Under the pieces are notes generated by a model. It searched no databases. It saw nothing but the letters and a program-made list of their open reading frames with translations, and was not told where the DNA came from. Positions 1 through 51,935 of a stretch of DNA of 64,000 bases are shown here, in pieces. Positions within the stretch are counted from its first letter, which is position 1, and every line of letters starts with the position of its first letter. This stretch comes from Mobula hypostoma (lineage: Eukaryota), in assembly GCF_963921235.1 (NCBI RefSeq), contig NC_086110.1, forward strand, positions 37,696,001 to 37,760,000, in the 5' to 3' direction. The position numbers were made by a program, and so were the translations under genes.

Positions 1-1320
1 GTGAAATCATCGGACAAAGTCAGCATGGATTTGTGAAAGGAAAATCATGTCTGACGAATCTCATAGAATTTTTTGAGGATGTAACTAGTAGAGTGGATAG
101 GGGAGAACCAGTGGATGTGGTATGTTTTGATTTTCAAAAGGCTTTTGACAAGGTCCCACACAGGAGATTAGTGTGCAAACTTAAAGCACACGGTATTGGG
201 GGTAAGGTATTGATGTGGATGGAGAATTGGTTAGCAGACAGGAAGCAAAGAGTGGGAATAAACGGGACCTTTTCAGAATGGCAGGCAGTGACTAGTGGGG
301 TACCACAAGGCTCAGTGCTGGGACCCCAGTTGTTTACAATATATATTAATGACTTGGATGAGGGAATTAAATGCAGCATCTCCAAGTTTGCGGATGACAC
401 GAAGCTGGGTGGCAGTGTTAGCTGTGAGGAGGATGTTAAGAGGATGCAGGGTGACTTGGATAGGTTGGGTGAGTGGGCAAATTCATGGCAGATGCAATTT
501 AATGTGGATAAATGTGAAGTTATCCACTTTGGTGGCAAAAATAGGAAAACAGATTATTATCTGAATGGTGGCCGATTAGGAAAAGGGGAGGTGCAACGAG
601 ACCTGGGTGTCATTATACACCAGTCATTGAAAGTGGGCATGCAGGTACAGCAGGCGGTGAAAAAGGCGAATGGTATGCTGGCATTTATAGCAAGAGGATT
701 CGAGTACAGGAGCAGGGAGGTTCTACTGCAGTTGTACAAGGCCTTGGTGAGACCACACCTGGAGTATTGTGTGCAGTTTTGGTCCCCTAATCTGAGGAAA
801 GACATTCTTGCCATAGAGGGAGTACAAAGAAGATTCACCAGATTGATTCCTGGGATGGCAGGACTTTATTATGATGAAAGACTAGATGAACTAGGCTTGT
901 ACTCGTTGGAATTTAGAAGATTGAGGGGGGATCTGATTGAAACGTATAAAATCCTAAAGGGATTGGACAGGCTAGATGCAGGAAAATTATTCCCGATGTT
1001 GGGGAAGTCCAGAACGAGGGGTCACAGTTTGAGGATAAAGGCGAAGCCTTTAAGGACTGAGATTAGGAAAAACTTCTTCACACAGAGATTGGTGAATCTG
1101 TGGAATTCTCTGCCACAGGAAACAGTTGAGGCCAGTTCATTGGCTATATTTAAGAGGGAGTTAGATATGGCCCTTGTGGCTACGGGGATCAGGGGGTATG
1201 GAGGGAAGGCTGGTGCAGGGTTCTGAGTTGGATGATCAGCCATGATCATAATAAATGGCGGTGCAGGCTCAAAGGGCCGAATGGCCTACTCCTGCACCTA
1301 TTTTCTATGTTTTCTATGTT
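1..1320 (+). mobile_element. CR1 LINE, RT region and 3' end (young copy; 5' part lies outside the window)
   Basis: Uninterrupted 397-aa RT ORF ([23 protein letters not shown]) and (TTTCTATGT)n-type tail. Confidence 0.95.
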
Positions 1321-2239: not shown

Positions 2240-2670
2240 ATATATCGTCACTATGCGAGGAGACATTGCCAGTGCACTGTTAATTTTGGTGTGTCCTCCG
2301 AATGCTTGGCCTTTAGGTACTTTTCAATCAGCTGATTGGACATCATTTTAGAAACTCAATTGTGGGGAGGAAATCTCGTCACTGAATGGCTTGGGGCAAA
2401 CTTCGTGCATTATGGTCTGGATTTTTGCGCACATCGGCTTATAAATAGGATTGGGGTCTACGTGTTTGCTTTCATGGTCGTATATTTCACCTTAAGCATT
2501 CATGGAGGAAGAAGGGTTGCTCCCGTGCGGAGGCTTGCCTACAGGCGATGTTCTCCCAACTAAGCATCAGTGAAAGTCACGGTGCAAGCGAACACGCGGC
2601 ATTCAAGAAAATTTCTAGAAGTGTGGTTTTCCGCGAACAATTCTGTAAACAAACACGTAGGCCTCAATTC
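2240..2670 (+). promoter_or_regulatory. CpG-richer unique region around candidate exon 1 (possible promoter/first-intron regulatory region)
   Basis: Many CpG dinucleotides (e.g. ccgtgcggag, cacggtgcaagcgaacacgcggc, ccgcgaac) against AT-rich, CpG-poor flanks. Confidence 0.35.
2253..2316 (+). CDS. Candidate exon 1, signal peptide [21 protein letters not shown]
   Basis: ATG at 2253, hydrophobic core [10 protein letters not shown], phase-1 donor TTAG|GTACTT matching the phase-1 V exon. Followed by a CpG-richer stretch. Confidence 0.6.
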
Positions 2671-5600
2671 TATCTATGAGCCAATGTGGGCAAAATGGCA
2701 CACCTGAATACTATTTTAAATTTGATTTCACATTATAATGTACTTTCTGTTTTTTATCTTCTCTCCACGCATCCCCCAAACATCTTGCAACCATAGTAAT
2801 TCCAAAGCAAAATAACATTTTCAGTGTGGAAGTCGATGGATTTGTCTCCTATATCTACGGCAATATGTTTCAACTGAGATCAAGTGAACGCTCTGTGAAG
2901 AAGTTTAAAGGAAAAGGAAGCATAGACCTTTAAGTCAAAGGAAGAATCACTGGTGCACTTTATCAAATACAGCATTGACCTCTTGATTCAGCATTGCAAG
3001 AAACAATGGAACCCTGTATGTTTGGCTCAATCAGCATGAACATGACACAATTGGGATGTTTAAAATCTTGTATAACAATCGTCAAATCATTGCTTTTAAA
3101 TATTTGGCAATGAAAGGATTTTCCAGAACGTTAGATAAATGTGTTCTCATTTGTAATCCTTACAAACTATGAATGAATACAGATAATTTTCTTTTAAAGC
3201 TGTGGTAAGTTTATCACAATGTTCAACAGCAGAAATTAAATTAGTTCTATGGGTAATTTGCATTTAGGTATTTGTGGCAAATATATATGTCACAGTGCAC
3301 TTCACAATGAGGAAGAAATATACCTTGGACCAATAAAGCAATCATTAGGAGTGTGAGTAAACTTGGTTAGAGTTATGTGTTTTAAAGAGGTTTTTAACAT
3401 GGATGTTGAAAGAGCTGTAAAATATGGATGCATTTGAGGGTGGCAAGTTTGAAGATAGAGAACCTGTGTGTTCAGAGAGGAATATGACCCAGAAGGAGTT
3501 CATAATGCAGAGAGGATAAAGTATAAGGAGGAATTTAAACACTTTAAAATTGACAGAATGATCTATGAAGAAATTGAACATCAGGGTAGGTAAAATGATA
3601 GACAAGTGGAACTGGTTCAGGTTCGAATGTGGAAAAGAAGCAATTTTTGATAGATTACAGTAACAGGGTAGAGGCTGGGGAGAAGAGACTGAAAGAGGAA
3701 CGGTAGAGCAAGTTTGAAAGTGACACCTGTAGCTGGTTGTCTCAGCATCTGATGGGGAATGTTACAGAGATAGGGTCTTTGTGACAGAGATGATAGAAAA
3801 TCTGGTTTACTGTGTCAATGAGAATATTGAGACTGAGAATGGTGGGGCTTAGCCATAAATATCACATGAAATCCTACTTAATAGGAAGAAACTCGATGTT
3901 TGTCGCTGTTGCTGAATACATTGTGGTTTATGAATCATTTCAATGATGTAATACTTAGGGGAAATAATTTACCAAAAAACAAATTAATTTGACATTTTAC
4001 TGCAATAGATGCATCATTAGAAAAAGAGTGTTACAATAATGAAAAGTCCTGCTTTCACTGTCTTGCAACAGATTGACTATTTGATGAAAACATTCATCAT
4101 CTCATAGCAAAGGGAAGTTTCTGAACTAGTTCATTTGCCGTATTTGGCATATAAGGATAATAATTACACAAGTCTGAGAGAAGTAGATGGTCAAAGAGCA
4201 GTAAAATCATAGTAGTTCATAAAGAAAAAGTTTTAAAAGAATTGGAAATAACTTACTGCTGAAATTACATGAAATGCTGCTGAGTGAAAATGTATATTTC
4301 ATAGTAAGGACATTCTAATGTTTGATCATATTGCAGATGAGTGAAAATATGAATCAGAAGCAGGTTTATTATCACTGTCTTGTATGACATGAAATTTGTT
4401 TTGCAGCAGTACAGTGGAAAGAAATTTTTTTAAAAGATTATAAATTACAAAATAAATATTGTTTTAAAAAAAAGGGAATAACCCAGCAGAGTTCTTGGAC
4501 TGTTCTGAGATCTGATGACAAAATTCCTCATTGCCTAGAAGCAGTTCATATATCTATGGTTTGTTATGCACTTGGATTTTCCCATGGAGTTCACAAGTAA
4601 AATCCAAATGAAGTAAACAAGAATACTGAATAAAAATGTCTTCAAATTGTCATCATTTGACATTCCAGAAAATGAATCTAAAAGTAGGATAATTTCGTAA
4701 TTTAAGGTTGTTCATGTGGAATATAATGTATTAAAAACTGCCAGCTGATTTTAGGAAAATTTAACCCATTGCCTGGTAATTTTTTAAATACCTCTAATTG
4801 GGTACCGAAAACATGTTTTTGTCAAATATGAATAATGCGTATTTAGGAGCACTGAATGAAGAAGAGGATTTTGTTATAATGGAAATTGGATTGCCTGGGA
4901 GGCCTGAGATGCTGTTGTGGGAAATGGACAGAATACTTGAGGGGAAGTGGTGTGAAGCAGATCTCCATCCTTGCCAATTACCAACAGGACTGCCAGTTAA
5001 TACAAGTTGCTTCTATTTCAGCAATGGATCTTGGAACTGTAAGGCGCTGGTGGTCTCTTTTCCACACACTGATTAGAATTCTGAGGAGAAAGGAACATAA
5101 TGAAAGCTGACAAGATCCTTACTTAAGTCCCTTGTTCAGACCTCAGCTTCACGTGAATGGTAGTGTGAGCAAAGCAGGTAGAGTTAATGAGGTTAGAGCA
5201 CATAGAATCAGGGGTAATATGCCAATATGGGCAAAGAATTGTCATCAAAATGAAAGCTAAAAGTGAGAGTAAATGAATGCTTCTTAGGTTGGCAGACTGA
5301 CTATTCTGCAGAGAATGCACTTGTGCCCTAGCTGTGCTCAATCTATCTAAATATTTGGCTGAAGGGTCCAAACATCACATTTCCAAGTTTGCTGAAGGTA
5401 ATAAACAAAGGGGATAGAATATAATATGGAAAAATATGAGATGATCCATTTAGGTAAATGACAGATGGGTAGAGCATTGAAAAGTGTGAAACTGGGTCAT
5501 GTTCATGTTCAAAGGAACTTTGGTGATCAATTCACTGATGACCAACATACAAGTACAGCAACAGTTAGGACAAACCTTATGTTATCCATTATAAAGAGGA

Positions 5601-8600
5601 TGTGATTACAAGAACTAAAAAGGGCTTATTGCAATTGCAAAGGTGTTGCTGAAACCCCCCACATGGAGTGTTGGGTATAATTTTGGCATGGAACAGTGCA
5701 GCATGGATTCACTGAAATAGTTCTATGGATGGCAGCGTCTCATATGAGGAGAGATTGAATGGACCGTGACTATATTATCCAGAGTTTAGAGAAATCAGAA
5801 GGGAAGCGAGTCGTATTACTTTCTTGAAAAGCATGCCAGGCTAAATTCAGGGAGAATATTTGCTGCAACTGACCATTGTGCGGAGTTGACAATAAGATGC
5901 AAGCCAATGAGGACTGAGATGAAACAGTTCTTCACTCGGGAGAAGGTAAGTCCAGAGGGATGAGGAAACCTTGTCAGTGAGTACATTCTAATCAGAAATC
6001 AATCATAACGATCAGATGGCTAACGTATATTCTTACCACTCCAGCACCAGCCCCTCACCCCTGTTTAGAAGACTGTGCGTACATTCTTTTATGGATATTT
6101 GCTGAAGTTAATAGAGGTAATTACAATGGTTGTGGTCACAGAACCTGAGACTAGAGGTTGACATTTTAGAAAGATGAAGTAACAGTTACTTTGTGAGAAT
6201 CAAATGCTTTGCTTCCTTATATAATCAGGGTTGTGAATGCTGTTGAGTGCTGGCAAATGAAGAGTGCTTGACAGCTATTCCAAGCATGCATTCTCACTAG
6301 GGTTACCAGCATTGCATGAAAATTGTGATCCTTTAAAAATTCACACATTCCCCTTTCAAATATTTTCTAGCAACACATAAAAAATGCTGGAGAAACTCCA
6401 CAGGCCTGGCAGCATCTATGGAAAAAGAGTACAGTTGACGTTTCTGGCCAATATCCCTCAAGACTCAGAAAAAGATGAGGAGTCAGAGTAAGAAAGTGGG
6501 GGGAGGGGAGGAAGAACCACAAGGTGATAGGTGAAACCGGGTGGGGGAGGGGTGAAGTAAAGAGCTGGGAAGTTGGTGAAAGAGGTACAGGGCTGGAGAA
6601 GGGGGAATCTGATAGGAGCAGACAGAAGGCCGTGGAAGAAAGAAAAGAGGGAGGTGATAGGTGAGAAGGTAAGGTGAGAGGGAGAAATGGGAATGGGGAA
6701 TGGTGAAGGAGGAGGGAGAGTGGGCATTGCTGGAAGTTTGAGAAATTTATGTTCATGCCATCAGGTTGGAGGCTACCCAGACCAAATATAAAGTGTTGCT
6801 GCTCCAACCTGCGTGTGGCCTCATCACGACAGTACAGGAGGCCATGGACTGATATGTGGGACTGGGAAGTGGAATTCAAATAGTTGGCCACTGGGAAATC
6901 TCGCTTTTCCTGGCAGACAAAGCGTAAGTGCTTAGCAAAACGGTCTCCCAATCTGCGTCAGATTTTCTAGTCATTTTGAGGTACAGCACAGAAATAGGTT
7001 TTTCAGCTCACAGAGCCCATGCCAATCATCAACCATTCATTTACAGTGGTCCTACATAAATCCAATCTTCTCCACATTCTCATCAGCTCTCCCAGATTAA
7101 ACCATTTCCTTGACACAAAGGACAATATACAGTGGCCGATTAACCTACATACCTACACGTTTGTGCCGTTGGATGAATCTGGAGGACCTAGAGGAAACCC
7201 ATGTAGTCACATGGAGAATGTGTGAACAACATTCAGACAGGACCCAAGGATCTTCGGCACTGTGAGGCAGTAACTCCACCAAATGCACCACTGTGTCACC
7301 CTAAACTGCTCAGCTTTTGCTTCTGAAACTACTTCAACTAATGCATGTTCACTGCCTATTTTTCCTGATGGCATTCCATTTACAGCCTTTTTATGGATTG
7401 ACTTTAAGGAAGTTTCTTTCCAGCCTTAATTTAACATTAATGTTTCTATACAATATATCCATAATCTGGCCAAATCTATTGTTTACTGTGACCATTCTGA
7501 ATTTAATGTTTTTGTAATGAATTGCACTGATCAATCAGTTCTTTGATCTGAGTTAAAGTGGTTTTTTCTTCTTCCTGTATGCAGTAATGTTTCTAAATTA
7601 AAGGCAAAGTTTCATGGTATTTGGCAATGTCATTTCTTTTTATTTTAAAATATACAGTAAAATATATCAATTATTGTTTAGTTATATCACATCGCATAAA
7701 TAATCCTGCCCTACATATTTTGAAAACATTGCCCCTTTAATTTTCCCATTTCAAAATCTTTCTGGTTTCAGTTTCTGTTTTCCAAATTCTCTTGTGACAG
7801 TTAAGATGAGGTCGTGTGCATTGTTTTTACTTCTACAAAATGGCCTTCAAGCTAAGAGGAAAAATGAACTGTTTGCTGATTGATCTGATGATATTTTACA
7901 TTCTCTCTTTAGTGGGTAAGTGGATATCTCCAGTTAAATGCAGCTAATGAGGTACTGCAAGCAAATTTTACAACAAAGGACTTGTATGTTAGGCCTGGAA
8001 TCTTCTCTGTAAGGGCTGTTCAGGTACACTGCTAAACTTCCTGGTTATTTTAACTTGAAAGGGAAAATCTACATTCTTGTATGCTCCGATACCAAATCAC
8101 TATCAATGTTTGTTCTGTGAGTGAAAGGGAAGGGGAGAACAGGGGTGTGCTGAATGTAGACTTTGATTAACTCTTTGAGGTGCAGTCAGATTTGAACATA
8201 GAATAGTACAGCACAGTACAGGCCCTTCGGCCCACAATGTTGTGCCGACCCTCAAACCCTGCCTCCCATATAACCCCCCACCTTAAATTCCTCCATATAC
8301 CTGTCTAGTAGACTCTTAAACTTCACTAGTGTATCTGCCTCCACCACTGACTCAGGCAGTGCATTCCACACACCAACCACTCTCTGAGTAAAAAAACCTT
8401 CCCCTAATATCCCCCTTGAACTTCCCACCCCTTACCTTAAAGCCATGTCCTCTTGTATTGAGCAGTGGTGCCCTGGGGAAGAGGCGCTGGCTATCCACTC
8501 TATTCCTGTAATTATCTTGTACACCTCTATCATGTCTCCTCTTATCCTCCTTCGCTCCAAAGAGTAAAGCCCTAGCTCCCTTAATCTCTGATCATAATGC

Positions 8601-11600
8601 ATACATTCTAAACCAGACAGCATCCTGGTAAATCTCCTCTGTACCCTTTCCAATGCTTCCACATCCTTCCTATAGTGAGGTGATCAGAACTGGACACAGT
8701 ACTCCAAGTGTGGCCTAACCAGAGTTTTATAGAGCTGCATCATTACCTCGCAACTCTTAAACTCTATCCCTCGACTTATGAAAGCTAACACCCCATAAGC
8801 TTTCTTAACTACCCTATCCACCTGTGAGGCAACTTTCAGGGATCTGTGGACATGTACCCCAAGATCCCTCTGCTCCTCCACACTACCAAGTATCCTGCCA
8901 TTTACTTTGTAGTCTGCCTTGGAGTTTGTCCTTCCAAAGTGTACCACCTCACACTTCTCTGGGTTGAACGCCATCTGCCACTTCTCAGCCCACTCCTGCA
9001 TCCTATCAATGTCTCTCTGCAATCTTTTGACAATCCTCTACACTATCTACAACACCCCCAACCTTTGTGTCGTCTGCAAACTTGCCAACCCACCCTTCTA
9101 CCCCCACATCCAGGTCGTTAATAAAAATCACGAAAAGTAGAGGTCCCAGAACAGATCCTTGTGGGACACAACTAGTCACAATTGTTTCAGTTTTTGTTAG
9201 GCCAAATCTATGCAAAGGTTGGCAATCTGTCAGACTGGATGAGAAACTTGCAATGTTTTTCTTCAGTTTCTGGTTTTTAATAGGTCCATTCTGGGAGTTT
9301 TAAGTACAGCCCATACTTCTGATCATGTGTCTACAAGACCAAAGGAGTAGATTGCCACACTGCTAACAAACACCTTCTGCCTGGGTACTAGATTCTTGGT
9401 TGCACCTTTACCTTGTGAACTGTCCGAGTTACAAACAATCTGTAGAAATGACCCTACCATAACCCGGGGAAAATCTGCATTATGGATTACTGTTTTTTTC
9501 TACTTTATTGGTATCACTGGCAAGAAGAGCATATATTACACAGCTCTTATTGTCCTTGAGAAGGTGGTAGTTGTGTTATGTGTGTACATAATAAAGAACT
9601 TCAGTTCCTAATGTGCAATACAGGTGGTTCACCCCAGAACCAGAAGTGACATTGATGTGCTGGTGGCACACACTCAGGTCGACCAGAAGCCATTCTGTAG
9701 ATAAATATGTGTTTTACCCATTCTGAGTTTGTCAAGAACAAACATAATATGGATTCAGAAGCGTGATCTGAACCCAAACTTAATTATATCCAAACCACAG
9801 AATGACTGTCCCATGAGGATACAGTGCATGTTGATAAGGCTGCAGAAATATAAGATGACCTACACAACGGGAAAATGTATATTTGCTGCTGATGTGCTTC
9901 CTGAGCAGTCAACAAGAAAGAAAAGAGTGACCAAGAGATTCATGCTGATATGGAGGTCTATGTTGACATGACTGTAGCCTCTATTCCAGTATCTCCCCAT
10001 TGAACAGATGAGATTAGGACAGCAGCAGGAACAAAAACAATGAAGGTACTCAAAAACACAATACAGAAAGGATGGCCAGCAAATAAAAATGACGGTCCAA
10101 TGTGTATTCAGGATTATTGGGTGTGCAGAGCTGAAATGTCAGCAGTGGAAGATACGGTCTTCAAAGGGAACAGGTTTGTGAATCCAGTGTCACTACACAT
10201 GGAAATGCTCCAAAAGATACATGAAGGGCATCTTGGTGAAGAGAAATGTAAATGTAAAGCTTGTGAAGTGATGTGCTGGCCAAGAATGAACTGAGACATT
10301 AGCCAGACCACAGCTTCATGTGAGATGTGTCTTATCTACAGACTAAAGCAGAAAGTAGAACCACTTACACTACACCCTGTAGCAGACAGGCTGCAGTTCA
10401 AAGTTGAAGTGGATTTGTTTGAATATTAGGGGAAGAGTCATACTGTTGTAAGAGACAACTTATCCAATTACCCAGAAATTCAACACTGCAATCAACATCT
10501 TGTAAAGCGGTTGTCACCTTCCTGAAAGCTGTGTTTGTGAGGCATGGAGTTCCATGTGAAGTGGTATCCGACAAGGGTCCACAATTTTCGAGCAGTGAAT
10601 TTGAGTTCTTTGCCAACAATTGGGGGACTTAACATATAACTTCAAGCCCACATCACCCAAAATCTAATGGCCAAGTAGAGAGTGTGGTCAAGGTAGTGAA
10701 GGGCCTCATGAAGATTGCGGAAGATGAACAAGAGGACTTCCTCAACAGTCCAATGATTTACAGAAGTGTACCGCTGTAGAATGGCCTTTCACCAGCCCAA
10801 ATGCTGGTGGTCAACACATGCACTAATCTATCAGTGAATGAAAACCTGTTGACACCTAAAGGAGCACACAAGGTCAAACAGAAACAGTATCACGACAAGA
10901 CTGCAAAAAGCCTACCAGTCCTGAAGCCTGCAAATCAAGTATGAATCTGAGATCACAATTCCAACACATGGTCCATGCAAGAGGAAGTTGCTCCACATCC
11001 CTACCAGAGACCCAGATGGAGTAGGAATACTAAGAAGGAACCGTTTGGATCTATGACCACAAGGCCCGACCCATAGCTGTGACACGCCACATGTTAGAAC
11101 ACCAAAGGGGCCAGCATATGTGAAAAAATAAACTTGTTGATCAGAGTTTTCAGAAACACACTAATAATAACGTAGCAAAGGAAGGCAATACATTTGTGAA
11201 AATAAATAGCAGACCAAAATGGATCACCAGACCAGTGCAGAGACTGACTGAAAGGTGTTCAGTGAATAAGAGACTATTTGCTCATTACAACCGAGGTTAA
11301 TGTAAGCATCTTTGTAGAATGCATTATTGTTTCTTGCAGGTTTATGAGGACATAGTATTGTGTTTGTTTTTTTTAAAGGGGTAAGATGTGTTATTATGTG
11401 TATACATAGTAAAGAACGTCAGTTCCCAATATGTAATGCGGGCAGTTCACCCCAGGACCAGAAGTGATGTTAGTGAACTGGTGGCATGCACTTGTGTCGA
11501 GCAGAGCCATTCTGTCAATAAAAATGTGTTGGTTTTACCCAAGCTAAGTTTATCTTTGATCAAGAACAAACATAACAGTAACGCGCCAGTTTGTGGAACC

Positions 11601-38600: not shown

Positions 38601-41600
38601 TCTGAGTCATTTATTATTCCTCTGTTACGTTCTTCAAATAAATCCTCATCATTACTTTCTACCTCTGAGTCTTGAGTTTACTCTGCGCCCGGCTCGTTTG
38701 CCTGAAGAAATCATTACAGCAAGTCTCGGGCATCATGGATCCAGCAGGGTTTGATCAGTTGGTAACTCAGTTATTGGAGTTTTTGCAGGTTGAAGCACAA
38801 CTCCATAGGGGAGAAAGGAGCAACACAAATTGCAGAGGCTTTGAAAACAAACAGCAGCCTGAAGGTATTGGGGTATGTATTGAACCTACTGGATTCAACA
38901 CTCGACAACCTCTGGATCGTTTGTAAGGAACAACGTTCTATTCAATGTATCAGAACACTTCAAAGCACTTAACTTCACTAATGAGCGAAAACCTTAAACT
39001 GAAACACAAAGGGAGAGATTATGTAGAATCTTAATCAGAAAGGTGAATTTTACGGTGCAGTTTTTAAAGTGGGAAAGGGTAAGAGAAGTGGAGAAGAAGG
39101 AATTCCTGGAGAGGAATTTAAGTACAACACCATAGAAGAATTGAGAGAGCTTTACAAGTAACTTCACTGAGAGAGCCACTGTACAGAGGCAGAAGTAAGC
39201 ATTTTGAACAATAGACCGTACATTGGTATAGTATATATTTTGTCATCTAATACATCAAGTCTGATTTAACTTCATATGTTTGCAAGGGAGAGACATGGGG
39301 ATGATGATAAAAGAAGAGAATTTGTAGTAGGACCAGAAACAAATGCTTCTCAATATTAAATTACAGAAAGTGTGTTTCTTTCAATACTGATATCAAACAA
39401 GCAGTGTGACTTAGAAACCAGAAAGGTAGATGCTGTCATTATGGATATGGAATAAGTTACTGGGTTTCAAATACTATTGGTTAGGAGCAGTTGTAGATGG
39501 GGAATAGAAGGGACCAGTACAGATTGTTGGAGAGCATCATAGTAACAGCGCAAGCCCAAAAGAGAAGCTATTGCTGCTGATGCTGTGACCATGACTGGTA
39601 GAGTGATATCCGAAACCAATAACCTAAGTCCCACCCATCAGAACAATGAAAAGATACTGGACAATGATGTAACTAACTGTACTAAAGGCTGTAATTTGGT
39701 AGAATAAGATGAAGACAAAATTACCTTTGTTATCAAGCAACATACATAAAAATTGCTGGTGAACGCAGCAGGCCAGGCAGCATCTATAGGAAGAGGTACA
39801 TTCGACGTTTCGGGCCGAGACCCTTCGTCAGGACTAACTGAAAAAAGAGATAGTAAGAGATTTGAAAGTGGGAGGGGGAGGGGGAGATCCAAAATGATAG
39901 GAGAAGACAGGAGGGGGAGGGATGGAGCCAAGAGCTGGACAGTTGATTGGCAAAAGGGATATGAGAGGATCATGGGACGGGAGGCCTATGGAGAAAGAAA
40001 GGGGGAGGGGGAAGCCCAGAGGATGGGCAAGGAGTATAGTGAGAGGGGCGGAGGGAGAAAAAGGAGAGTGAAGGAATAAATAAATAAATAAATAAATAGA
40101 TAGATAGATAGATAGATAACGGATGGGTACCAAGGGGAGGTGGGGCATTAACGGAAGTTAGAGAAGTCAATGTTCATGCCATCAGGTTGGAGGCTACCCA
40201 GATGGAACACCTACGCTCTGTCCGCCAGAGAAAACAGGATCTCCCAGTGGCCACACATGTTAATTCCACGTCCCATTCCCATTCTGATATGTCTATCCTC
40301 GGCCTCCTCTACTGTAAAGATGAAGCCACACTCAGGTTGGAAGAACAACACCATATATTCCATCTGGGTAGCCTCCAACCTGATGGCATGAACATCGACT
40401 TCTCTAACTTCCACTAATGCCCCACCTCCCCCTCGTACCCCATCTGTTACTTACTTTTATACACACATTCTTTCTCTCACTCTCCTTTTTCTCCCTCTGT
40501 CCCTCTGATTATACCCCTTGCCCATTCTCTGGGTTTTCCCCGCTCCCTCTTTTCCTTCTGCCTGGGCCTCCTGTCCCATGATCCTCTCATATCCCTTTTG
40601 CCAATCACCTGTCCAGCTCTTGGCTCCATCCCTCCCCCTCCTGTCTTCTCCTATCATTTTGGATCTCCCCCTCCCCCTTCCACTTTCAAATCTCTTACTA
40701 ACTCTTCCTTCAGTTAGTCCTGATGAAGGGTCTTGGCTCGAAACGTCCACTGTACCTCTTCCTAGAGATGCTGCCTGGCCTGCTGCGTTCACCAGCAACT
40801 TTTATGTGTGCGTTGCTTGAAATTGATTTCTTCGTGATTACCTTTGTTATGTTCATTTGGGTATGATTACTGATTAGAAGCTTTCAAGGGCTCAAACAAA
40901 TGATTTAACTGCATTGTTGTTTTAGTCGCTGTATTGCTGATAGATCTCCTGATACTAACTAAATCACTTTGCCTTCATTAGGTTGAGAGCAAATGTTGTC
41001 AAAGCCAAAGGTGCTCAGTTCATAGCCGAGGCCCTGGAAGTCAACACCACACTGAGAGTTTTGGGGTATGTTGTCGTTCTCTTCTACTTGTGCTTGTGTG
41101 ATTTCAGAGCAGCACCGTTTACTGCTTATTTTGAAAACTCGATTGACGTTGTCTCATTGCAGCTCGTGCTCTTCATGTTAAAAATGTTTTCAGCTTATCT
41201 TGTATAATTTATGATATATGACCTTTAAAAACCAGAGGTCGAAAAGTAAGTGTCTGTACTCACAGCTTTATCATCATTCAATCAATGCTAGAACAAAGCA
41301 TTAGAATTGCTTATCTGTGTGATCTAAAGAGCATGGGCGTTATGCTAGATCTTCACCATTTGCTCATATCTTCATATGGGACAGTACTTCTGATTGAGCA
41401 AACTGCGTTACTGGGTGCTCGCTGTTAGGAATTCAAGCAAAGCTGAAGCCAATGAGGACGAGAGCGGAGGGCGGGCGGGTGGATGGGCATTCAGTGCTGT
41501 CTGCCTGCATTTTACCAGCCTTGCTCTTCCTCTCACTGGCTGCTTTCTCTCGGAGGAAGGCGCAGGAGCCATTTGCAAGGATTGATCGGCGTGGCTTGTG

Positions 41601-44600
41601 GTTAAGGATCTTTTTCCGGAAATTTTGAGTGTGATGTTGCATGTATTTCTGGATTCAGGTTACTCTTTCCTTTTTGCAGTTTTTGAGCAGTTTGATCAGG
41701 GTGCTTCAGTGTGGACTGGGGCACTTCGGTGAAGTCTGACTCTGCAGAATGCAGTCGGCTGGTGGTGTGGAACTGAACTGAACTAAACGGAATACTGCTA
41801 GACTCGTAGTTTGATGTTGCCAAAAAACTCCATGTTCATTAAGCTGTTGTGTGCCTTTTTAATACTTATAAAGCTCCACTGAAAGCTGACTCAGTGGATT
41901 CTGATTAGAACATGGAACAAGAAGAGCAAATTGTCTCATCGCTTTGATTCCTCTCTATCAATACCTATGCCTGTTTCTATAGAGTTTAAAATTTTTTAAA
42001 CTTTATTTAAAAATGAACATTAATATATTTGTATCTTTGTCTTAACTCAGCTTGCAGTGTAACAAGATTGGAGATGAAGGTGCAAAGTACATGGCCCAAG
42101 CAGTTGAAAGAAATCGCAGCTTGGTTGAATTACGGTATAGATTAAATCTAAGCTCACATATTAAAACCTATCCCACTTCAACTGCTCAGGCACACGCAAC
42201 TTTGTAACAATTTTAGCTTATTAACTTTTAGTTGCCATATTTTTCTTCTCAAGGCTTAGACCTATCAAGTACTGAGTTTCTTTGAAATATTTTACAGACT
42301 TCACCTATCATATCTACTCTTCAGCTGACAGCTCCCTTGTAATTCAAAATAATTGCAATATATTACATGTCCTCAGTTATAAGAATTCAAAGCTATGATA
42401 CTCCTCTAACAGCAAATGACCTTATCCTGCTGGTCCAATCCTAGATACCTCCCTGCAATTTGCTCTCCACTTTCATGATAAGTACTCTGTTTTATTCACA
42501 AAAAATAAGGTCTGTCCTTGGGAATTCCAGGTGTCCGGCCAGAAGAGCTTAAAGGCTAGCTGATCAGATCTACAATCATTGAAGTGTTTTAATTCATTTA
42601 TTCTTTTCAACTTGGAAATGTCCTACACTGTGACTCATTTCATAATTCATTTGTAGCTTAATATACCGTTAATGAGTCAAATATAGTCTTGAACATTACT
42701 TATACCCACTCAATTCCACAGGAGATATGATTGAGAAATCATTGCTTTTATTGTAAAATTATATATCTATAATTATTGTGTAAATAATTGCTTTTGACTG
42801 TAATGGAAACAGGAAATGCTGGATATAATCAGCAGGTCAAGCCTTGGGAAAAGAAACATGAAAATCTTTCAGGTTGAGGGCCATTCATCAAAACTTCAGA
42901 ACTCTGTTCTGACAGAAGGTTTTGACCTAAAGCATGAAATCCATTTTTCTATGCAGTGTGACTTGCTGAGTATTTCCTGCATTTTATGTTCTATTTTAGA
43001 TTTCCAGCATGAGCAGTTTTTGTTTTAAGTTCAATTGAATACTGTATGACTACTTTGGTTAGCAGATTTAACATAGTTTATTTTGTGTAAAATCCTTTCT
43101 GAAAAAAGTTCAAGACAGAAAATTCAGTACTGTCTTTCAATCTCATTTTTTTAAATCTTAATCAAACCTTTAAGACTTATTTTCACTTTTGTAATATTTT
43201 CACTGAATCATTGTTTATTGCTCATTAAATGCTGGTTTTGCCAGTACCATGCATATTCCAAAATATGAATAAGTTAAAAAAACACAGTAACAAATTCATT
43301 AACCAGTAGTTTCTATAATTCACACTTTTGACCTTTATTTTCATATATATTATCAGTATAATTCTAAGACAAGATCTGATTAATAAAATAGATATATCTT
43401 GTTTGCAGACTTGGAGATAATGAAATCACTGACAAGGGGAGTGGTTACTTTAGAAGTGCTTTAGAAGTAAATGATGCACTTGAAGAATTGTGGTAAGAAT
43501 TTTGTTTTGATTTCCATGTTTTTGAAAGTTTATTTATTATAATGTAATTGCACTTTGGGATCTCATGCACAGGGCTTTTATTTTCTTGGAACAAAACAAT
43601 CCAACAGATAGGCAGATTTCAGTATTATGATGTTTGCTATTTATGATGGAAATCATATCTTTAAATAAAAATAAATTGAATTTGTCCCTATTGTTCATTA
43701 CTGAGAAAGAAATACTAATCAATGTGAAGAGTACTAAAAGCTCTTTATAAAAAATATTGTGGAATTACATACAAAAATAATGTTAAACTATTGTATAACC
43801 ATATATCTTGTTTAACACTGCAAATTTAAACTTTTCTGATGGGGTATTTGAAGATAAATTATTATAAACCTGAAGATAAAACCAACAAAAAACTGTAATA
43901 ACCCAACCTGCATTGAAAACTTGTAATGTTACCAAATAAAATGCATTTGGGTTATGCATTTATTTTTTAAAAAACATCTTTAATACCTATAAAATAGATC
44001 AATATGTTTTTTAAAAATATTATTTTTAGTGCCTCCCATGGTCTTGCACACAGTGCTCGAGGAACATAGAAAGCCTACAGCACAATATAGGCCCTTCGAC
44101 ATGTCCTTAATATAGAAATTACCTAGGGTTACCCATAGCCCTCTATTTTTCTATGCTCCATGTACCTATCCAGGAGTCTCTTAAAAGACCCTATCGTATC
44201 CGCCTCCACCACTGTTGCCAGCAGCCCATTCCACGCACTCACCTCTCTCTGCATAAAAAACTTACCCCTGACATCTCCTCTGTACCTACCCCTCAGCACC
44301 TTAAATCTGTGTCCTTTTGTGGCAACCCTTTCAGCCCTGGGAAAAAGCCTCTGACTATCCACACAATCAATGCCTCTCATCATCTTATACACCTCTATCA
44401 GGTCACCTCTCATCCTCCGCCGCTCCAAGGAGAAAAGGCCGAGTTCACTCAAACTATTCTCATAAGGCATGCTCCCCAATCCAGGCAACATCCTTGTAAA
44501 TCTCCTCTGCACCCTTTCTATGGTTTCCACATCCTTCCTGTAGTGAGACGACCAGAACTGAGCACAGTACTCCAAGTGGGGTCTAACCAAGGTCCTATAT

Positions 44601-47374
44601 AGCTGCAACATTGTCTCTCGGCTCCTACATTCAATACCACGATTGATGAAGGCCAATACACCGTATGCCTTCTTAACCACAGAGTCAACCCACGCAGCTG
44701 CTTTGAGCGTTCTATGGACTCGAACCCCAAGATCCCTCTGACCCTCCACACTGCCAAGAGTCTTACCATTAATGCTATATTCTGCCATCATATTTGACCT
44801 ACCAAAATGAACCACTTCACAATTATCTGGGTTGAACTCCATCTGCCACTTCTCAGCCCACTTTTGCATCGTATCAATGTCCTACTGTAACCCCTGACAG
44901 CCCTCCACACTATCCACAACACCTCCAACCTTTGTGTCATCAGCAAACTACTAACCCATCCTTCCACTTCCTCATCCAGGTCATTTATAAAAATCATGAA
45001 GAGTAAGGGTCCCAGAACAGATCCCTGAGGCACACCACTGGTGACCGACCTCCATGCAGAATATGACTCATCTACAAACGCTCTTTGCCTTCTGTGGGCA
45101 AGCCAGTTCCGGATCCACAAAGCAATGTCCCCTTGGATCCTATGCCTCCTTAGTTTTTCAATAAGCCTTACATGGGGTAGTTATTAAATGCCTTGCGGAA
45201 ATCCATATACACTACATCTACTGCTCTTCCTTCATCATTGTATTTAGTTACATCCTCAAAAAATTCAATCAGGCTCATAAGGCACGACCTGCCCTTGACA
45301 AAGTCATGCTGACTATTCCTACTTATATTATACCTCTCCAAATGTTCATAAATCCTGCCTCTCAGGATCTTCTCCATCAACTTACCAACCACTGATGCAA
45401 GAGTCACTGGTCTATAATTTCCTGGGCTATCTCTACTCCCTTTCTTGAATAAAGGAACAACATCTGCAACCCTCCAATCCTCTGGAACCTGTCCCGTCCC
45501 CATTTGTGATGCAAAGATCATCACCAGAGGCTCAGCAATCTCCTCCCTCACCTCCCACAGTGGCCTGGGGTACATCTCATCCGGTCCTGGCGACTTATCC
45601 AACTTGACGCTTTCCAAAAGCTCCAGAACATCCTCTTTCTCAATATCTACATGCTCAAGCTTTTCAGTCTGCTGCAAGTCAGTACTACAATCACCAAGAT
45701 CCTTTTCCATAGTGAATACTGAGGTAAGGTATTCATTAAGTACCTCTGCTATTTCCTCCGGTTCCACACATACTCTCCTACTGTCACACTTGATAGATCC
45801 TATTCTTTCACGTCTTATCCTCTTACTCTTCACATACTTGTTGAATGCCTTGGGGTTTCCTTAATCCTGCCCACCCTAATTTCCTTCTTAAGCTCCTTTC
45901 TATTAGCCTTATAATCTTCTAAATCTCTAACATTACCTAGCTCTCTGAACCTTTTGTAAGCTTTTCTTTTCTTCTTGACTAGATTTATTACAGCCTTTGT
46001 ACACCATAGTTCCTATACCCTACCATAACTGCCCTGTCTCATTGGAACGTACCTGTGCAGAACTCCACACAAATATTTCCTGAACATTTGCCACATTTTT
46101 TCCGTACTGTTCCCTGAGAACATCTGTTTCCAATTTAAGCTTACAATTTCCTGCCTGATAGCCTCATAATTCCCCTTACTCCAATTAAACGCTTTTCTAA
46201 CTTGTCTGTTCCTATCTCTCTCCAATGCTATCGTAAAGGAGATAGAATTATGATCACTATCTCCAAAATGCTCTCCCACTGAGAGATCTGACACATGATG
46301 AGTTTCATTTCCCAGTACCAGATCAAATGCAGCCTTTCCTCTTGTAGGCTTATCTACATATTGTGTCAAGAACCCTTCCTGAACATACCTAACAAACTCC
46401 ACCCCATCTAAACCCCTTGCTTTAGGAAGATGCCAATCGATATTTGGGAAATTAAAATCTCCCATCATGACAACTCTGTTATTATTACACCTTTCCAGGA
46501 TCTGTTTCCCTATCTGCTCCTCGATGTCCCTGTTACTATTGGGCGGCCTACAAAAAACGCCCAGTAAAGTTATTGACCCCTTCCTGTTTCTAACCTCCAC
46601 CCACAGAGACTCCGTAGACAATCCCTACATGGCGTCCACCTTTTCTGCAGCCATGACACTATCTCTGATCAACAGTGCCATGCCCCCACCTCTTTTGCCT
46701 TCCTCCCTGTCCTTTCTGAAACATCTAAAACCCGGCACTTGAGGTAACCATTCCTGTCCCTGAGCCATTCAAGTCTCTGTAATGGCCACCACATCATATC
46801 TCTAAGTACTGATCCACGCTCTAAGGTCATCCACTTTGTTCACAACACTTCTTGCGTTAAAGTAGACGCATCTCAACACTTCATTCTGAGCACGCCCCTT
46901 CCCTATCACTTGTCTATCCTCCCTTTCGCACTGTCTACAAGCTTTCTCTATTTGTGAGCCAACCTCCCCCTATCAGTGATCACTGGTGCTGGAAAGCAAT
47001 TGCACTAACCACTATGCTAATGTGCCATGCAATAAAATCTAATAAAATTTTCTCAGCTTATAATTGGGTGAATAAGATGTAAGTATCTTACTCGCCCAAT
47101 ATCATCAGACAAAAATTAACAAGAAGATCAGTGCCTCTATGTCTATGGAGGAAGTAAGAACTACAGATACTCTTATTAGAAAATAACCCTTAATTTTAAT
47201 GTTAAGGACTTGATGGATTTGCAAACTCAAGAATGTGAATATAAATTTTGTGTTCTTCTGAAATTCTTTAACTTTCATTTATCTTTTAGGATTTTGGTGA
47301 ATAACATATCAAGTGCTGGAAAGGAAAGATTGAAAAATGCCTGGCGTAAAAATCCAAATCTTCGATTGAATTAA
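2253..47374 (+). CDS. Predicted 13-exon gene, join(2253..2316,14198..14539,16002..16331,19440..19553,21183..21608,30791..31228,32762..34487,37504..37590,38789..38872,40982..41065,42051..42134,43409..43492,47290..47374): SP-IgV-IgC1-TM-cytoplasmic Ig-CARD-NACHT-LRR, 1315 aa (B7-H6-like/NOD1-like membrane NLR)
   Basis: Every junction is GT-AG with compatible phase (1,1,1,1,1,1,2,2,2,2,2,2). Summed length is 3948 nt, divisible by 3, with a single stop at the end. Least certain parts are exon 1 and the 21608^30791 junction. Confidence 0.72.
5000..5950 (+). mobile_element. Old degraded CR1 fragment
   Basis: Remnants resembling RT-coding segments (atttccaagtttgctga, ccccacatggagtgttgggtataattttgg). 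Confidence 0.6.
6367..6960 (-). mobile_element. Penelope-like element 3' fragment (GIY-YIG endonuclease C-terminus plus tail with degraded hammerhead)
   Basis: [12 protein letters not shown]...FPVANYLNS...[25 protein letters not shown]; tail shared with the 39734-40836 element. Confidence 0.8.
6980..7285 (-). mobile_element. Degraded HE1/V-SINE-like element
   Basis: Reverse-strand V-domain-like gaggaaacccatgtagtcacatggagaatgtg and a CR1-like 3' tail. Confidence 0.55.
8194..9180 (-). mobile_element. 5'-truncated CR1 LINE
   Basis: RT ORF fragments (8432-9215) and gaacatagaa tail. Confidence 0.92.
9572..11577 (+). mobile_element. Internally deleted Gypsy/Ty3 LTR retrotransposon (LTRs about 9572-9749 and 11387-11577)
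   Basis: Diverged direct repeats TGTGTT...CATAA(T/C)A, TGG-starting PBS-like site at 9750, polypurine aaaggggtaaga before the 3' LTR. RNase H ([15 protein letters not shown]) and integrase zinc-finger ([12 protein letters not shown]...WPRMN) remnants. Confidence 0.85.
12297..13702 (-). mobile_element. 5'-truncated CR1 LINE
   Basis: RT ORFs 12371-13297 and 13251-13670 separated by a frameshift. Confidence 0.95.
14198..14539 (+). CDS. NCR3LG1-like: Ig V-set exon, B7-H6/NCR3LG1-like ([10 protein letters not shown]...LLSCLF...IVIEW...[22 protein letters not shown]...VTLSIS)
   Basis: Acceptor tttttaatatag|CT, donor TCAG|gtgagt. Canonical Cys, Trp and D-x-G-x-Y-x-C motif; B7-family GNASL motif; [13 protein letters not shown] resembles the recalled B7-H6 segment FEFFGDHQEAFRPG. 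Confidence 0.9.
14815..15215 (-). mobile_element. CR1 3' fragment
   Basis: [20 protein letters not shown]...GNFFTQRVV. Confidence 0.85.
15490..15925 (-). mobile_element. RTE-clade LINE 3' fragment
   Basis: [33 protein letters not shown] motif typical of the RTE C-terminal region; (TAC)n tail near 15491. Confidence 0.75.
16002..16331 (+). CDS. NCR3LG1-like: Ig C1-set exon (APPAV...[17 protein letters not shown]...[13 protein letters not shown]...[11 protein letters not shown]...LTVK)
   Basis: Acceptor ttattgtag|CA, donor AAGG|gtgagt. C1 motifs CxxxxFYP, W, NxDGTF, YxCxVxHxxL; N-glycosylation sequons NIT, NHS, NQS. Confidence 0.92.
17106..17187. mobile_element. hAT-Charlie-type MITE
   Basis: TIRs CAGCGGTTCCCAAAC / GGTTGAGAACCCCTG; flanks TGCTGGAG and TTCTAGAG match at 6 of 8 positions and resemble the NTCTAGAN target. 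Confidence 0.7.
17703..19028 (-). mobile_element. 5'-truncated CR1 LINE
   Basis: Frameshifted RT ORFs 17980-19027. Confidence 0.92.
19440..19553 (+). CDS. Transmembrane exon ([38 protein letters not shown])
   Basis: Acceptor tttgtcttcatag|GA, donor ATAG|gtaagt, phase 1-1, about 25 uncharged, mostly hydrophobic residues. Confidence 0.85.
20215..21115 (+). mobile_element. Degraded CR1 LINE fragment
   Basis: [24 protein letters not shown]...; ctatgactc-type tail. Confidence 0.75.
21183..21608 (+). CDS. Post-transmembrane C1-like Ig exon ([18 protein letters not shown]...[11 protein letters not shown]...[11 protein letters not shown]...VIVEIE)
   Basis: Acceptor tttgattttcag|TT, donor GAAG|gtgagt, phase 1-1, open for 142 codons. 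C1 strand motifs are recognisable, with the F-strand Cys replaced by Phe. Confidence 0.85.
21735..22695 (-). mobile_element. CR1 LINE fragment
   Basis: RT ORFs 21903-22481 and 22310-22642. Confidence 0.92.
23865..27835 (-). mobile_element. Rex1/Babar LINE (endonuclease and RT remnants), interrupted by a CR1
   Basis: ORFs [62 protein letters not shown]...SPDIELLAV; (GATA)n-like tail near 23870. Confidence 0.85.
23996..25110 (-). mobile_element. Internally deleted CR1 nested in the Rex1/Babar 3' region
   Basis: ORFs 24190-24522 and 24884-25108; host sequence resumes at about 25111. Confidence 0.85.
27832..28480 (-). mobile_element. CR1 3' fragments
   Basis: cataggagcagaattaggccat 3' end and RT remnants. 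Confidence 0.75.
29053..29320 (+). mobile_element. tRNA-derived HE1/V-SINE
   Basis: tRNA-like head ggcggcacggtagcatagtg, V-domain ggtttcctcccacagtccaaaga, (TAAA)n tail. Confidence 0.8.
29490..29828 (-). mobile_element. Degraded V-SINE-like element
   Basis: Reverse-complement similarity to the SINE head and body (ctatgctaccatgcacc end). Confidence 0.55.
30791..31228 (+). CDS. NOD1-like: CARD exon, NOD1-like ([18 protein letters not shown]...[38 protein letters not shown]...)
   Basis: Acceptor ttcctcatag|GT, donor GAAG|gtaagt, phase 1-1. The CARD helix pattern resembles the NOD1 CARD as recalled (KVRKILDLVQSKGEEVSEFF). Confidence 0.88.
32762..34487 (+). CDS. NOD1-like: NACHT exon (NBD, HD1, WHD, HD2 and first LRR)
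   Basis: Acceptor taattatag|AA, donor TGAG|gtaatg. Walker A GVAGIGKS, Walker [10 protein letters not shown], sensor-1 LITSRP, HD1 [25 protein letters not shown]2 LRFTAGL, CLYEA. Confidence 0.96.
34495..36918 (-). mobile_element. CR1 LINE (endonuclease-RT remnants) immediately after the NACHT donor site
   Basis: Several frameshifted ORF2 fragments 34779-36677; gaacatagaa tail at 34498. Confidence 0.93.
37504..37590 (+). CDS. LRR exon 1 ([29 protein letters not shown])
   Basis: 87 nt, phase 2-2, cag|T...AAG|gtaaaa, ribonuclease-inhibitor-type LRR consensus. Confidence 0.9.
38789..38872 (+). CDS. LRR exon 2 ([28 protein letters not shown])
   Basis: 84 nt, phase 2-2, tttgcag|G...GG|gtatgt. Confidence 0.92.
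39800..39835 (-). ncRNA. Minimal type I hammerhead ribozyme motif (Penelope-associated)
   Basis: Minus strand AGTC-CTGACGA-A-GGG-TCTCGG-CCC-GAAAC-GTC|GAAT: intact core, stem II, palindromic ACGT stem III, one mismatch in stem I. Confidence 0.75.
40716..40751 (+). ncRNA. Minimal type I hammerhead ribozyme motif (partly degenerate)
   Basis: AGTC-CTGATGA-A-GGG-TCTTGG-CTC-GAAAC-GTC|CACT; core intact, G-U wobble in stem II, mismatch at the first stem I pair. Confidence 0.65.
40982..41065 (+). CDS. LRR exon 3 ([28 protein letters not shown])
   Basis: 84 nt, phase 2-2, cattag|G...GG|gtatgt. Confidence 0.92.
42051..42134 (+). CDS. LRR exon 4 ([28 protein letters not shown])
   Basis: 84 nt, phase 2-2, aactcag|C...CG|gtatag. 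Confidence 0.92.
43409..43492 (+). CDS. LRR exon 5 ([28 protein letters not shown])
   Basis: 84 nt, phase 2-2, tttgcag|A...TG|gtaaga. Confidence 0.92.
44062..46965 (-). mobile_element. CR1 LINE with most of ORF2 (endonuclease and RT), frameshifted
   Basis: ORFs 44129-44869, 44788-45120, 45168-45833 and 46013-46621 (APE motif MGDFNFP). Confidence 0.95.
47290..47374 (+). CDS. Terminal coding exon, LRR cap ([28 protein letters not shown])
   Basis: Acceptor atcttttag|G, phase 2, TAA at 47372-47374; looks like a typical NLR C-terminal cap. Confidence 0.85.
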
Positions 47375-51128: not shown

Positions 51129-51935
51129 TAGTCCATTAGCCAGGACCCCAAATTTGGGCCACCGATACCATCTGGGGGGAGTAATTCTTATAGTGATTTT
51201 TGGCAAGGTATCACCCCTAGTGCTAGAAAATATGTGATAGCATTGCAGCAGTGGTCGCTTTCATAGTAAACTCCATGCTATAAGAACCATGATCCCAGGT
51301 GCTTTGCCTATGATAAGATGAATTATGCCAGGTACCTGTCCCCTTACTTTGCTCAGATGATGAACCTCCCGGAGAAGAATCCTCCTCTGTCTGAGGCCTT
51401 CAAGACAGGCCAATTCTCAGTGCAGCTGTCAAGTAACAACCCCTTTGGGCAGATCCCTGTGGACCAGGCCATTGAAGCCACAGTGAACAAAGACACACGG
51501 ACTCCTGGAGGCACATCACAGTTCAGCCTGAATGCTGGAGCTATCAAGCATTACGGCATAACAGCTGAGCACCGCAGTGCATTCCTGGGACAGTTAAGGG
51601 AGATGGTGCAAGGCAACAAATCAGAGCTTTGTCATGCGGAGCTACAGCGGCCAAGAATCCAGAAAGATGAGGAAACAGTTTCAGCAGCGGTTAGCCTCAT
51701 ACATGAATGGGTCAACCCATTTGCAGAGAAGTGGGACCTCACTAGCATCTCTAGGGCAAAGGCAGCCCCCAAGGACATTGCCTCCAACCTGATGAAGGCA
51801 TATGAGATTGGTGATCAATGCTACGCAACCTTCAGGGATGAGAGACTAGAGGAAGACCCACCAGCAAAGAAATTCCATGACCCAATGAAAACCAACAAGC
51901 TGAAAACATTCAGTAATATGTGTAAGAAGAGAGAA
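51129..51935 (+). mobile_element. DNA transposon fragment, probably Academ-like
   Basis: ORF 51318-52016: NYARYLSPY...LP...F..GQFSV...DQAIE..NKD.RTPGG...NPF motif series as recalled from Academ-type proteins; the GC-richer block starts with TAG at 51129. Family assignment is from memory. Confidence 0.5.

Follow-up and report, generated by a model that had tools for sequence, protein, structure and literature searches.

The gene described here occupies positions 7840-47374 on the forward strand of a 64,000-nt stretch of DNA from the ray Mobula hypostoma (the window, to whose positions all coordinates refer; all exons of the gene lie on this strand). Its predicted product of 1319 amino acids consists, in order, of a signal peptide, an IgV and an IgC1 immunoglobulin (Ig) domain, a transmembrane (TM) segment, a C1-like Ig domain, a CARD, a FISNA-NACHT region, and about seven LRRs. 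The interval is very probably a single 13-exon gene for a predicted type I membrane protein with a CARD-NACHT-LRR tail, and the gene is the single-copy elasmobranch orthologue of a nurse-shark protein deposited as "B7H6". As the best explanation overall, we consider it likely that this one gene encodes a membrane-anchored, B7-H6-like NLR, which may be activated mainly from the cytosolic side. An earlier interpretation made from the nucleotide letters alone (the sequence-only reading) had already proposed a membrane NLR at this place; its single gene and predicted type I membrane NLR are retained here, while its first exon had to be given up; the architecture, of which it knew no described vertebrate example, is already on public record.

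The first 57 kb of the window (the part compared) are identical to the M. hypostoma assembly GCA_963921235.1, record OY992605.1, and the window contains no runs of N. To build the exon model, GT and AG sites were enumerated around tblastn cores and the protein XP_062923016.1 (P0274), which is nearly identical to the window exons in tblastn (100% on most), was threaded onto the window. The solution was unique, with 13 exons, GT-AG sites throughout, and a translation matching XP_062923016.1 at 1319 of 1319 residues; exons 2 to 7 each start in phase 1 (Table 1). In public databases, this protein bears the automatic name "NLR family CARD domain-containing protein 3-like" (NLRC3-like). The sequence-only reading had let the gene begin at 2253, with a first exon at 2253-2316. 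This was wrong, as the interval lies inside the last intron of the upstream gene POP4, and the leader peptide that it encodes is like no orthologue N-terminus, whereas the leader motif of 7840-7915 is common to the orthologues. As a candidate for exon 1, 2253-2316 was therefore ruled out by the POP4 gene range, which extends to 2933, and by the lack of orthologue likeness. The open reading frame (ORF) obtained by joining this interval to exons 2-13 was reproduced with 1315 amino acids and one terminal stop; the two lengths differ because the two candidate leaders differ by four residues.

The junction of exons 5 and 6 bears on whether there is one gene or two. The end of the Ig-like exon (ATA GAA G/gtgagt, with the G at 21608), the phase-1 start of the CARD exon (cctcatag/GT at 30791), and the 11 open codons 5' of the first ATG of the latter (context CAA ATG A) were all found as previously read, and the split codon G/GT encodes Gly. 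Orthologous loci were compared in six rays and sharks (Mobula, Hemitrygon, Pristis, Heterodontus, Scyliorhinus, and Chiloscyllium). The exon-5 donor G/gtgag and the CARD acceptor ag/GT, both in phase 1 and forming a Gly codon, are present in 6/6 loci, in which intron 5 measures 9182, 11429, 4999, 2990, 910, and 4676 bp, respectively; the 910 bp in the catshark Scyliorhinus leave little room for a terminator and a promoter. The Met encoded in the CARD exon is Leu or Val in Chiloscyllium (TTG in the DNA), Rhincodon, Ginglymostoma, Narcine, and Heptranchias, so that the exon cannot start a stand-alone CARD-NLR in these five species, and the residues YFP encoded 5' of this position are invariant across the species compared. 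Because the exon chain, phases, and frame recur in the six loci and in at least 18 annotated species, a chance join is excluded. The exact threading and the recurrence across elasmobranchs uphold the earlier claim of a single gene that unites the exons for Ig and TM with those for CARD, NACHT, and LRR.

Intron 5 carries minus-strand, reverse-transcriptase-like ORF fragments of long interspersed nuclear elements (LINEs) throughout, as well as weak CpG patches at 28.9-30.4 kb. Apart from these patches, no sign of an internal promoter or of a terminal exon was found in intron 5, in agreement with the sequence-only reading, which had seen in this gap neither a convincing terminal Ig exon nor a separate first exon of an NLR gene. 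In cross-species blastn, the intron shows neutral-level similarity to the stingray throughout and nearly none to sharks, with no block conserved beyond the neutral level. Exon 5 has no in-frame stop close to its donor in any species; in Mobula, the frame runs on past the donor to a first stop at 21653-21655. A tRNA-derived element resembling a short interspersed nuclear element (SINE) was recognized by eye in this intron at about 29050-29300 (+), where Rfam and tRNA scans were empty. This SINE-like element accounts for the CpG patch at 28.9-29.3 kb, and a 78-nt match in the Chiloscyllium intron 5 falls inside it.

The same architecture was found widely among sharks and rays. When the whole library was searched by HMMER with the NACHT exon as the query, a single close match was obtained, a 1168-amino-acid protein of Narcine bancroftii, which carries Ig and TM regions ahead of the NACHT-exon sequence beginning at residue 425. 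When the first 424 residues of this protein were used as the query, 14 proteins with the same Ig region, NACHT, and LRR were retrieved from 12 elasmobranch species, including four rays (Narcine, Pristis, Mobula, and Hemitrygon) and eight sharks (Pristiophorus, Heptranchias, Heterodontus, Carcharodon, Chiloscyllium, Rhincodon, Scyliorhinus, and Mustelus). According to Pfam, a CARD is present in all 14 proteins except two CARD-less isoforms. Further species in sequence clusters bring the annotated architecture to at least 18 sharks and rays. A second, non-Gnomon pipeline produced the full fusion in Chiloscyllium punctatum (GCC25762.1) and a shorter protein with IgC1, CARD, NACHT, and LRR, and no V-set match, in S. 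torazame (GCB79211.1). The nurse-shark protein QTT61908.1 (1318 amino acids), which is a non-RefSeq entry named "B7H6" by its depositor, shares 69% identity with the Mobula protein over the full length, the exon 5/6 junction included.

Every compared exon is under purifying selection. The ratio of nonsynonymous to synonymous substitution (dN/dS), calculated pairwise per exon by the Nei-Gojobori method across the species compared, was between 0.12 and 0.81, and thus below 1, for all exons and species pairs (Table 1), and no stop occurs in the compared exons of any species. The annotations of Narcine and Pristiophorus include CARD-less isoforms (P0121, P0276), shorter by 146 codons, with exon 5 joined in frame to exon 7, which suggests that CARD inclusion is regulated; the shorter isoforms listed for other species have lengths compatible with CARD skipping. 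In the Mustelus asterias model (P0283), the start of the exon-5 domain, at about columns 300-340 of the orthologue alignment, is partially duplicated in tandem, which is either real or an annotation quirk.

Two explanations compete with a single fused gene. The locus might mostly give separate products, with an Ig-only B7H6 that ends after exon 4 or 5, a soluble CARD-NLR transcribed from a promoter in intron 5, and the full fusion as a minor or read-through form. The many isoforms annotated per species (1134 to 1347 amino acids), the long intron 5 of rays (9-11 kb), and its weak CpG-rich patches at 28.9-30.4 kb are in favor of this arrangement. However, all isoforms listed have at least 1134 amino acids and keep most of the chain, although shorter products would have escaped the length window of the search; the CARD exon has no conserved ATG and opens in phase 1, and the peptide encoded upstream is conserved; one CpG patch is SINE-like; and the short catshark intron, the lack of an intron block conserved beyond neutral, and the missing stop near the exon-5 donor do not fit it either, so we regard mostly separate products as improbable. 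The fusion might also be an annotation artefact, in which gene predictors joined two neighboring, independent genes, one for a B7-like Ig protein and one for a CARD-NLR, whose exons are compatible in phase by chance. Phase 1-1 exons are common among genes of the immunoglobulin superfamily, and in-frame joins can therefore occur by chance; moreover, superficially similar bichir models (P0068/P0271), with a 1.12-Mb range and nested genes, look unreliable. Nevertheless, the same join is found in at least 18 species by at least two pipelines and in the depositor's nurse-shark protein, its donor and acceptor are conserved in all six loci of rays and sharks, the CARD-exon start codon is missing in five species, neither half turned up as a stand-alone protein in the searches made, and the exon-5 domain is found only in this gene, where it is under purifying selection. 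An artefact is accordingly very improbable, and a single fused gene is the reading followed below.

The ectodomain is of the B7 type, in which an IgV and an IgC domain with canonical disulfides are followed by a single TM segment. The IgV exon (at 14.2 kb) matches the Pfam V-set at 1.5e-12, and its closest solved structures are CD276/B7-H3 (the best, 1.6e-13), VTCN1, B7-H6 (7e-8), and PD-L1; neither the pair Cys49-Cys121 nor two NxS/T sequons vary among 12 species. The IgC1 exon (at 16.0 kb) matches the Pfam C1-set at 9e-14, and its best non-antibody solved match is B7-H6 (NCR3LG1) at 1.9e-14, with the whole exon aligned; Cys163 is present in 11/12 species and Cys229 in 12/12. The cues to orthology with mammalian NCR3LG1 are therefore mixed, with the IgC1 closest to B7-H6 among non-antibody structures and the IgV closest to CD276. 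Nonetheless, the label "B7-H6-like" given by the sequence-only reading is apt, in view of the IgC1 match and of the nurse-shark orthologue deposited as B7H6.

Only two strong hydrophobic segments are common across species, namely the leader and the TM segment. The former peaks at residues 12-30 in 11/12 species, and the latter is at the same position (about residues 250-280) in 12/12, with a Kyte-Doolittle 19-mer mean of 1.85-2.63; in the Narcine orthologue, a helix appears at residues 252-278 of a low-confidence AlphaFold model. Given the known topology of signal peptides and membrane anchors, it is highly likely that IgV and IgC1 face the extracellular space or the lumen, and that the chain C-terminal to the TM segment is cytosolic.

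The exon-5 domain follows the TM exon and is therefore predicted to be cytosolic as well. The sequence-only reading, which took exon 5 for the last Ig exon, had its donor right and overlooked its position 3' of the TM exon at 19440-19553. The domain, of about 142 residues, is unique to this gene and may act as a spacer or as an oligomerization surface. Each of the six orthologous copies matches the Pfam C1-set, the best at 2.7e-6; a profile built from them matches C-kappa at 2e-5 over strands E-F-G, and the constant-domain motif Y-x-C-x-V-x-H reads Y-[YS]-F-x-V-x-H. In 12/12 species, the first of the two Ig cysteines is retained while Phe replaces the second, which leaves the domain without its disulfide and fits long residence in a reducing compartment. 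An origin of exon 5 by duplication of the IgC1 exon was considered and is unsupported (BLASTP E = 0.4).

The C-terminal part has the features of an NLR, including a NACHT with Walker A and B motifs, winged-helix and helical domains, C-terminal LRRs, and an adjacent death-fold CARD. It departs from the usual soluble cytosolic state of vertebrate NLRs, as a signal peptide (11/12) and a TM segment (12/12) are predicted. The CARD matches Pfam CARD at 9.7e-11, and its profile matches the solved structures of ICEBERG (2.3e-9), NOD1 and CARD11 (about 1e-4), and caspase-1 (4e-3). A pyrin domain, the N-terminus of the NLRP subfamily, was sought by Pfam without a match, the CARD being there instead. The NACHT exon matches Pfam NACHT (1.8e-32), NLRC4_HD2 (3.6e-9), and, weakly, NOD2_WH and FISNA (5.6e-3). 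Its best solved relative is NLRP3 (2e-44), compared with about 1e-28 to 1e-30 for NLRP1 and NOD2 (NOD2 1e-28), and the NLRP3 alignment runs from query residue 12, which corresponds to NLRP3 residue 143 in the FISNA region, through the winged helix. The ATPase motifs are present, with Walker A (GVAGIGKS) at 665, Walker B (LFLLDGLDE) at 737, and TSRP at 787. The LRRs, encoded by six exons of 84-87 nt and by part of exon 7, are of the ribonuclease-inhibitor type, and LRR_6 matches were obtained in orthologues.

A tree of NACHT sequences unites the elasmobranch proteins, with strong support, in a single clade on a long stem, within which the branching broadly tracks the species tree. Closest to this clade are the "NLRP3-like" proteins of sharks, caecilian, lungfish, coelacanth, sturgeon, and bichirs. 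As to the automatic name NLRC3, the NLRC3 of gar is only 27% identical and was used as the outgroup, the "NLRP3-like" proteins and NLRP3 are closest, and no test favored NLRC3. Three Polypterus senegalus models (P0068, P0190, and P0271), located in a cluster of TRIM, BTN, and NLR genes, combine a butyrophilin-like IgV-IgC region, a TM segment, a weak CARD, and NACHT-LRR; the gene range of the longest isoform spans 1.12 Mb and encloses further genes, and the models were not trusted. These bichir models were rejected as orthologues, as they nest in a polypterid NLRP3-like expansion beside non-Ig and TRIM-NLR members. They may represent an independent fusion if real, and chimeric models otherwise.

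Several points weigh against a membrane-anchored, B7-H6-like NLR made from one gene. An Ig-fold domain in the cytosol would be unusual, and the AlphaFold models, with a predicted local distance difference test score of about 40 (40 for the exon-5 domain from 6 sequences, 41 for the full CARD-less Narcine protein from 14 sequences), are uninformative. The TM segment has more basic residues on its N-terminal than on its C-terminal side. As to a possible orthology with mammalian B7-H6, the IgV is best matched by CD276, and the human NCR3LG1 neighborhood presumably differs from that of POP4. The RNA support is indirect, consisting of isoform annotations and the depositor's nurse-shark sequence; a search for assembled short fragments with exon 5 (78-247 amino acids) returned none, and no transcript was seen. 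An internal promoter that gives a soluble CARD-NLR, or an Ig-only isoform, may exist.

Table 1. Features of the Mobula hypostoma window, with the range of pairwise dN/dS for the part of the protein encoded
Feature	Position	Strand	Content and evidence	dN/dS
POP4 last coding exon	2739-2933	+	ORF 2739-2930 matches RNase_P-MRP_p29 (RNase P/MRP subunit p29)	
Exon 1	7840-7915	+	initiation codon and signal peptide; 25 codons plus one base; donor gtaagt in phase 1	
Exon 2	14198-14539	+	IgV, B7-family-like; phase 1-1	IgV 0.12-0.45
Exon 3	16002-16331	+	IgC1; phase 1-1	IgC1 0.17-0.48
Exon 4	19440-19553	+	single TM segment and short flanking sequence; phase 1-1	TM 0.15-0.81 (short exon)
Exon 5	21183-21608	+	degenerate C1-set Ig-like domain 3' of the TM exon; phase-1 donor	0.27-0.49
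Intron 5	21609-30790	+	9182 bp	
Exon 6	30791-31228	+	linker and CARD; phase 1-1; 146 codons	CARD 0.29-0.70
Exon 7	32762-34487	+	FISNA-NACHT-winged helix-HD2 and first LRR	NACHT 0.14-0.23
Exon 8	37504-37590	+	LRR; threading and tblastn of 14 orthologues	
Exon 9	38789-38872	+	LRR; threading and tblastn	
Exon 10	40982-41065	+	LRR; threading and tblastn	
Exon 11	42051-42134	+	LRR; threading and tblastn	
Exon 12	43409-43492	+	LRR; threading and tblastn	
Exon 13	47290-47374	+	last LRR and C-terminus; TAA stop 47372-47374; threading and tblastn	

The neighbor directly upstream on the same strand is POP4 by Pfam in 5/6 loci, while an unannotated gene of 220 amino acids is found there in the catshark. 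The orthologue of the basking shark Cetorhinus maximus (P0318, 1317 amino acids) is auto-named "PLEKHF1 isoform X1", which hints that PLEKHF1 is the downstream neighbor and that the locus was mis-merged in this species; the ORF list of the window at 47.4-64 kb contains no obvious PLEKHF1 exons. Relics of mobile elements are scattered over the introns and flanks. Frame-shifted Integrase_H2C2 and rve fragments at 10004-10941 (+), in intron 1, are the relic of a long terminal repeat retrotransposon, and ORF fragments of LINE/CR1 reverse transcriptase and endonuclease (Exo_endo_phos_2, zf-RVT) occur on both strands at 33-1226 (+), 12371-13670 (-), 21903-22642 (-), 44129-46621 (-), 52354-53403 (+), and 58778-59290 (+). 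An ATG-initiated ORF of 232 amino acids downstream of the gene, at 51318-52016 (+), has no Pfam match and is probably transposon-derived.

STAND ATPases are normally opened from the sensor/LRR side. Reasoning from how STAND/NLR proteins work, we tentatively propose a model with two outputs, to which we give slightly less than an even chance, in which the membrane-tethered NACHT-LRR would be switched on from the cytosolic (LRR/NACHT) side by nucleotide exchange and would then oligomerize on the membrane. The CARD might recruit a CARD partner in the same cell (caspase-1-like, ASC-like, or RIPK2-like), with the CARD-less splice form acting as a modulator. Since the ectodomain is B7-H6-like, oligomerization would at the same time cluster a putative ligand for NKp30-family receptors on lymphocytes, so that the cell might be flagged from the inside out, as with BTN3A1.

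The sequence-only reading had instead pictured an outside-in receptor, in which a ligand or receptor clusters the B7-like ectodomain, and the proximity of the NACHT domains leads to oligomerization and CARD signaling, as in TLRs or death receptors. The architecture, with its ectodomain, single TM segment, spacer domain, CARD, and NACHT, is compatible with this, and CARDs are known to signal via proximity-driven polymerization. In addition, a sea-cucumber Ig-TM-NACHT receptor was reported as a surface receptor for Vibrio (PMC8699970, PMC13133943). However, the LRR and NACHT parts are the most constrained (dN/dS 0.14-0.23), which speaks for a ligand or partner conserved in the cytosol and against the role of a passive scaffold. 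NLR/STAND proteins are also held closed by ADP and by the LRR/sensor side and need nucleotide exchange, and clustering is not known to open them. That engagement of the ectodomain drives NACHT oligomerization is pure inference, and we consider it unlikely; by analogy with other STAND proteins, sensing from the inside, or inside-out signaling, seems at least as likely as activation from outside. Still less likely is a two-way molecule, in which cytosolic danger would cluster B7H6 for NKp30 receptors, and engagement by NKp30 would trigger CARD-dependent death or inflammation of the target cell; the fused state might then be ancestral, with B7H6 and NLRP-type genes splitting later in bony vertebrates. 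In humans, NCR3LG1 is located in 11p15, as are several NLRP genes.

According to the textbook view, the NLRs of vertebrates are soluble sensors of the cytosol, with lipidation or lipid binding as their only route to membranes. Sharks and rays, since their split, have kept an NLRP3-like CARD-NLR joined to a B7-H6-type ectodomain under purifying selection. If the protein is made as predicted, it offers a natural test of whether membrane tethering suffices to organize NLR oligomers and whether an NLR can be driven from outside the cell, and it bears on whether the NKp30-B7H6 axis began wired to cell-intrinsic danger sensing. The automatic names "NLRC3-like" and "NOD1-like" obscure this architecture in the databases. 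Already on public record, the gene model joins two known families, NLRs and B7 ligands, rather than representing a new category; since the sequences can be accessed publicly, one of them under the name B7H6, the laboratory that deposited it may already know part of this. Such a prior public record lowers the novelty, not the biological interest. The sequence-only reading knew of no described vertebrate receptor of this kind; RefSeq and GenBank carry models for many elasmobranchs, and Ig-TM-NACHT receptors of sea cucumber have been described (PMC8699970, PMC13133943). A full-text literature search found no description of a vertebrate Ig-TM-NLR, the work most likely to treat shark B7H6 lying outside its coverage, and the NLRs listed in the paper on the whale-shark genome, among them a new family related to NLRP, come with no mention of Ig or TM (PMC8455134).

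Compared with known systems, the elasmobranch protein shares a signal peptide, IgV, IgC1, and a single TM segment with mammalian B7-H6 (NCR3LG1, the NKp30 ligand), and differs from it in a tail of about 1040 residues comprising an Ig-like domain, a CARD, and an NLR. The tail of human B7-H6 is short and gag-like, with signaling motifs and without CARD, NACHT, or LRR. With NLRP3 and the FISNA-NACHT NLRs of lower vertebrates, it has in common the alignment from FISNA to winged helix, intact Walker A/B and sensor motifs, and LRR exons of the ribonuclease-inhibitor type; unlike NLRP3, it has a CARD in place of the pyrin domain, only about seven LRRs, and, at the N-terminus, a signal peptide followed by an Ig ectodomain and a TM segment, and it forms a long-stemmed clade of its own. 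NLRP3 attaches to membranes via a polybasic region and palmitoylation, not via a TM helix. NOD1 and NOD2 have the same order of CARD, NACHT, and LRR, and the NOD1 CARD is the second-best CARD match (1e-4), but the elasmobranch NACHT is far closer to NLRP3 than to NOD2. Moreover, NOD1 and NOD2 need a membrane location, which they gain through S-palmitoylation, whereas membrane attachment is predicted to be hard-wired in the elasmobranch protein.

Ig, TM, and NACHT in a single chain also occur in the AjNLRC4-type receptors. The sea-cucumber proteins AjNLRC4 and AjNLR-new were reported to be membrane-localized and, as described, lack a CARD and canonical LRRs, with an extracellular NACHT proposed for one of them (PMC8699970, PMC13133943); TM-containing NLR models were also noted in sponges (PMC12909245). 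The fusions of sea cucumber or sponges and that of elasmobranchs are likely of independent origin. The best functional analogy is provided by the butyrophilins BTN3A1 and BTN2A1, which likewise possess a B7-like IgV-IgC ectodomain, one TM segment, and an intracellular sensor. BTN3A1 signals inside-out to lymphocyte receptors. The sensor of butyrophilins is B30.2 and not a STAND ATPase, and they have no CARD (teleost NLR-B30.2 proteins were compared alongside), whereas the elasmobranch protein carries both the ATPase and the CARD behind its B7-type ectodomain.

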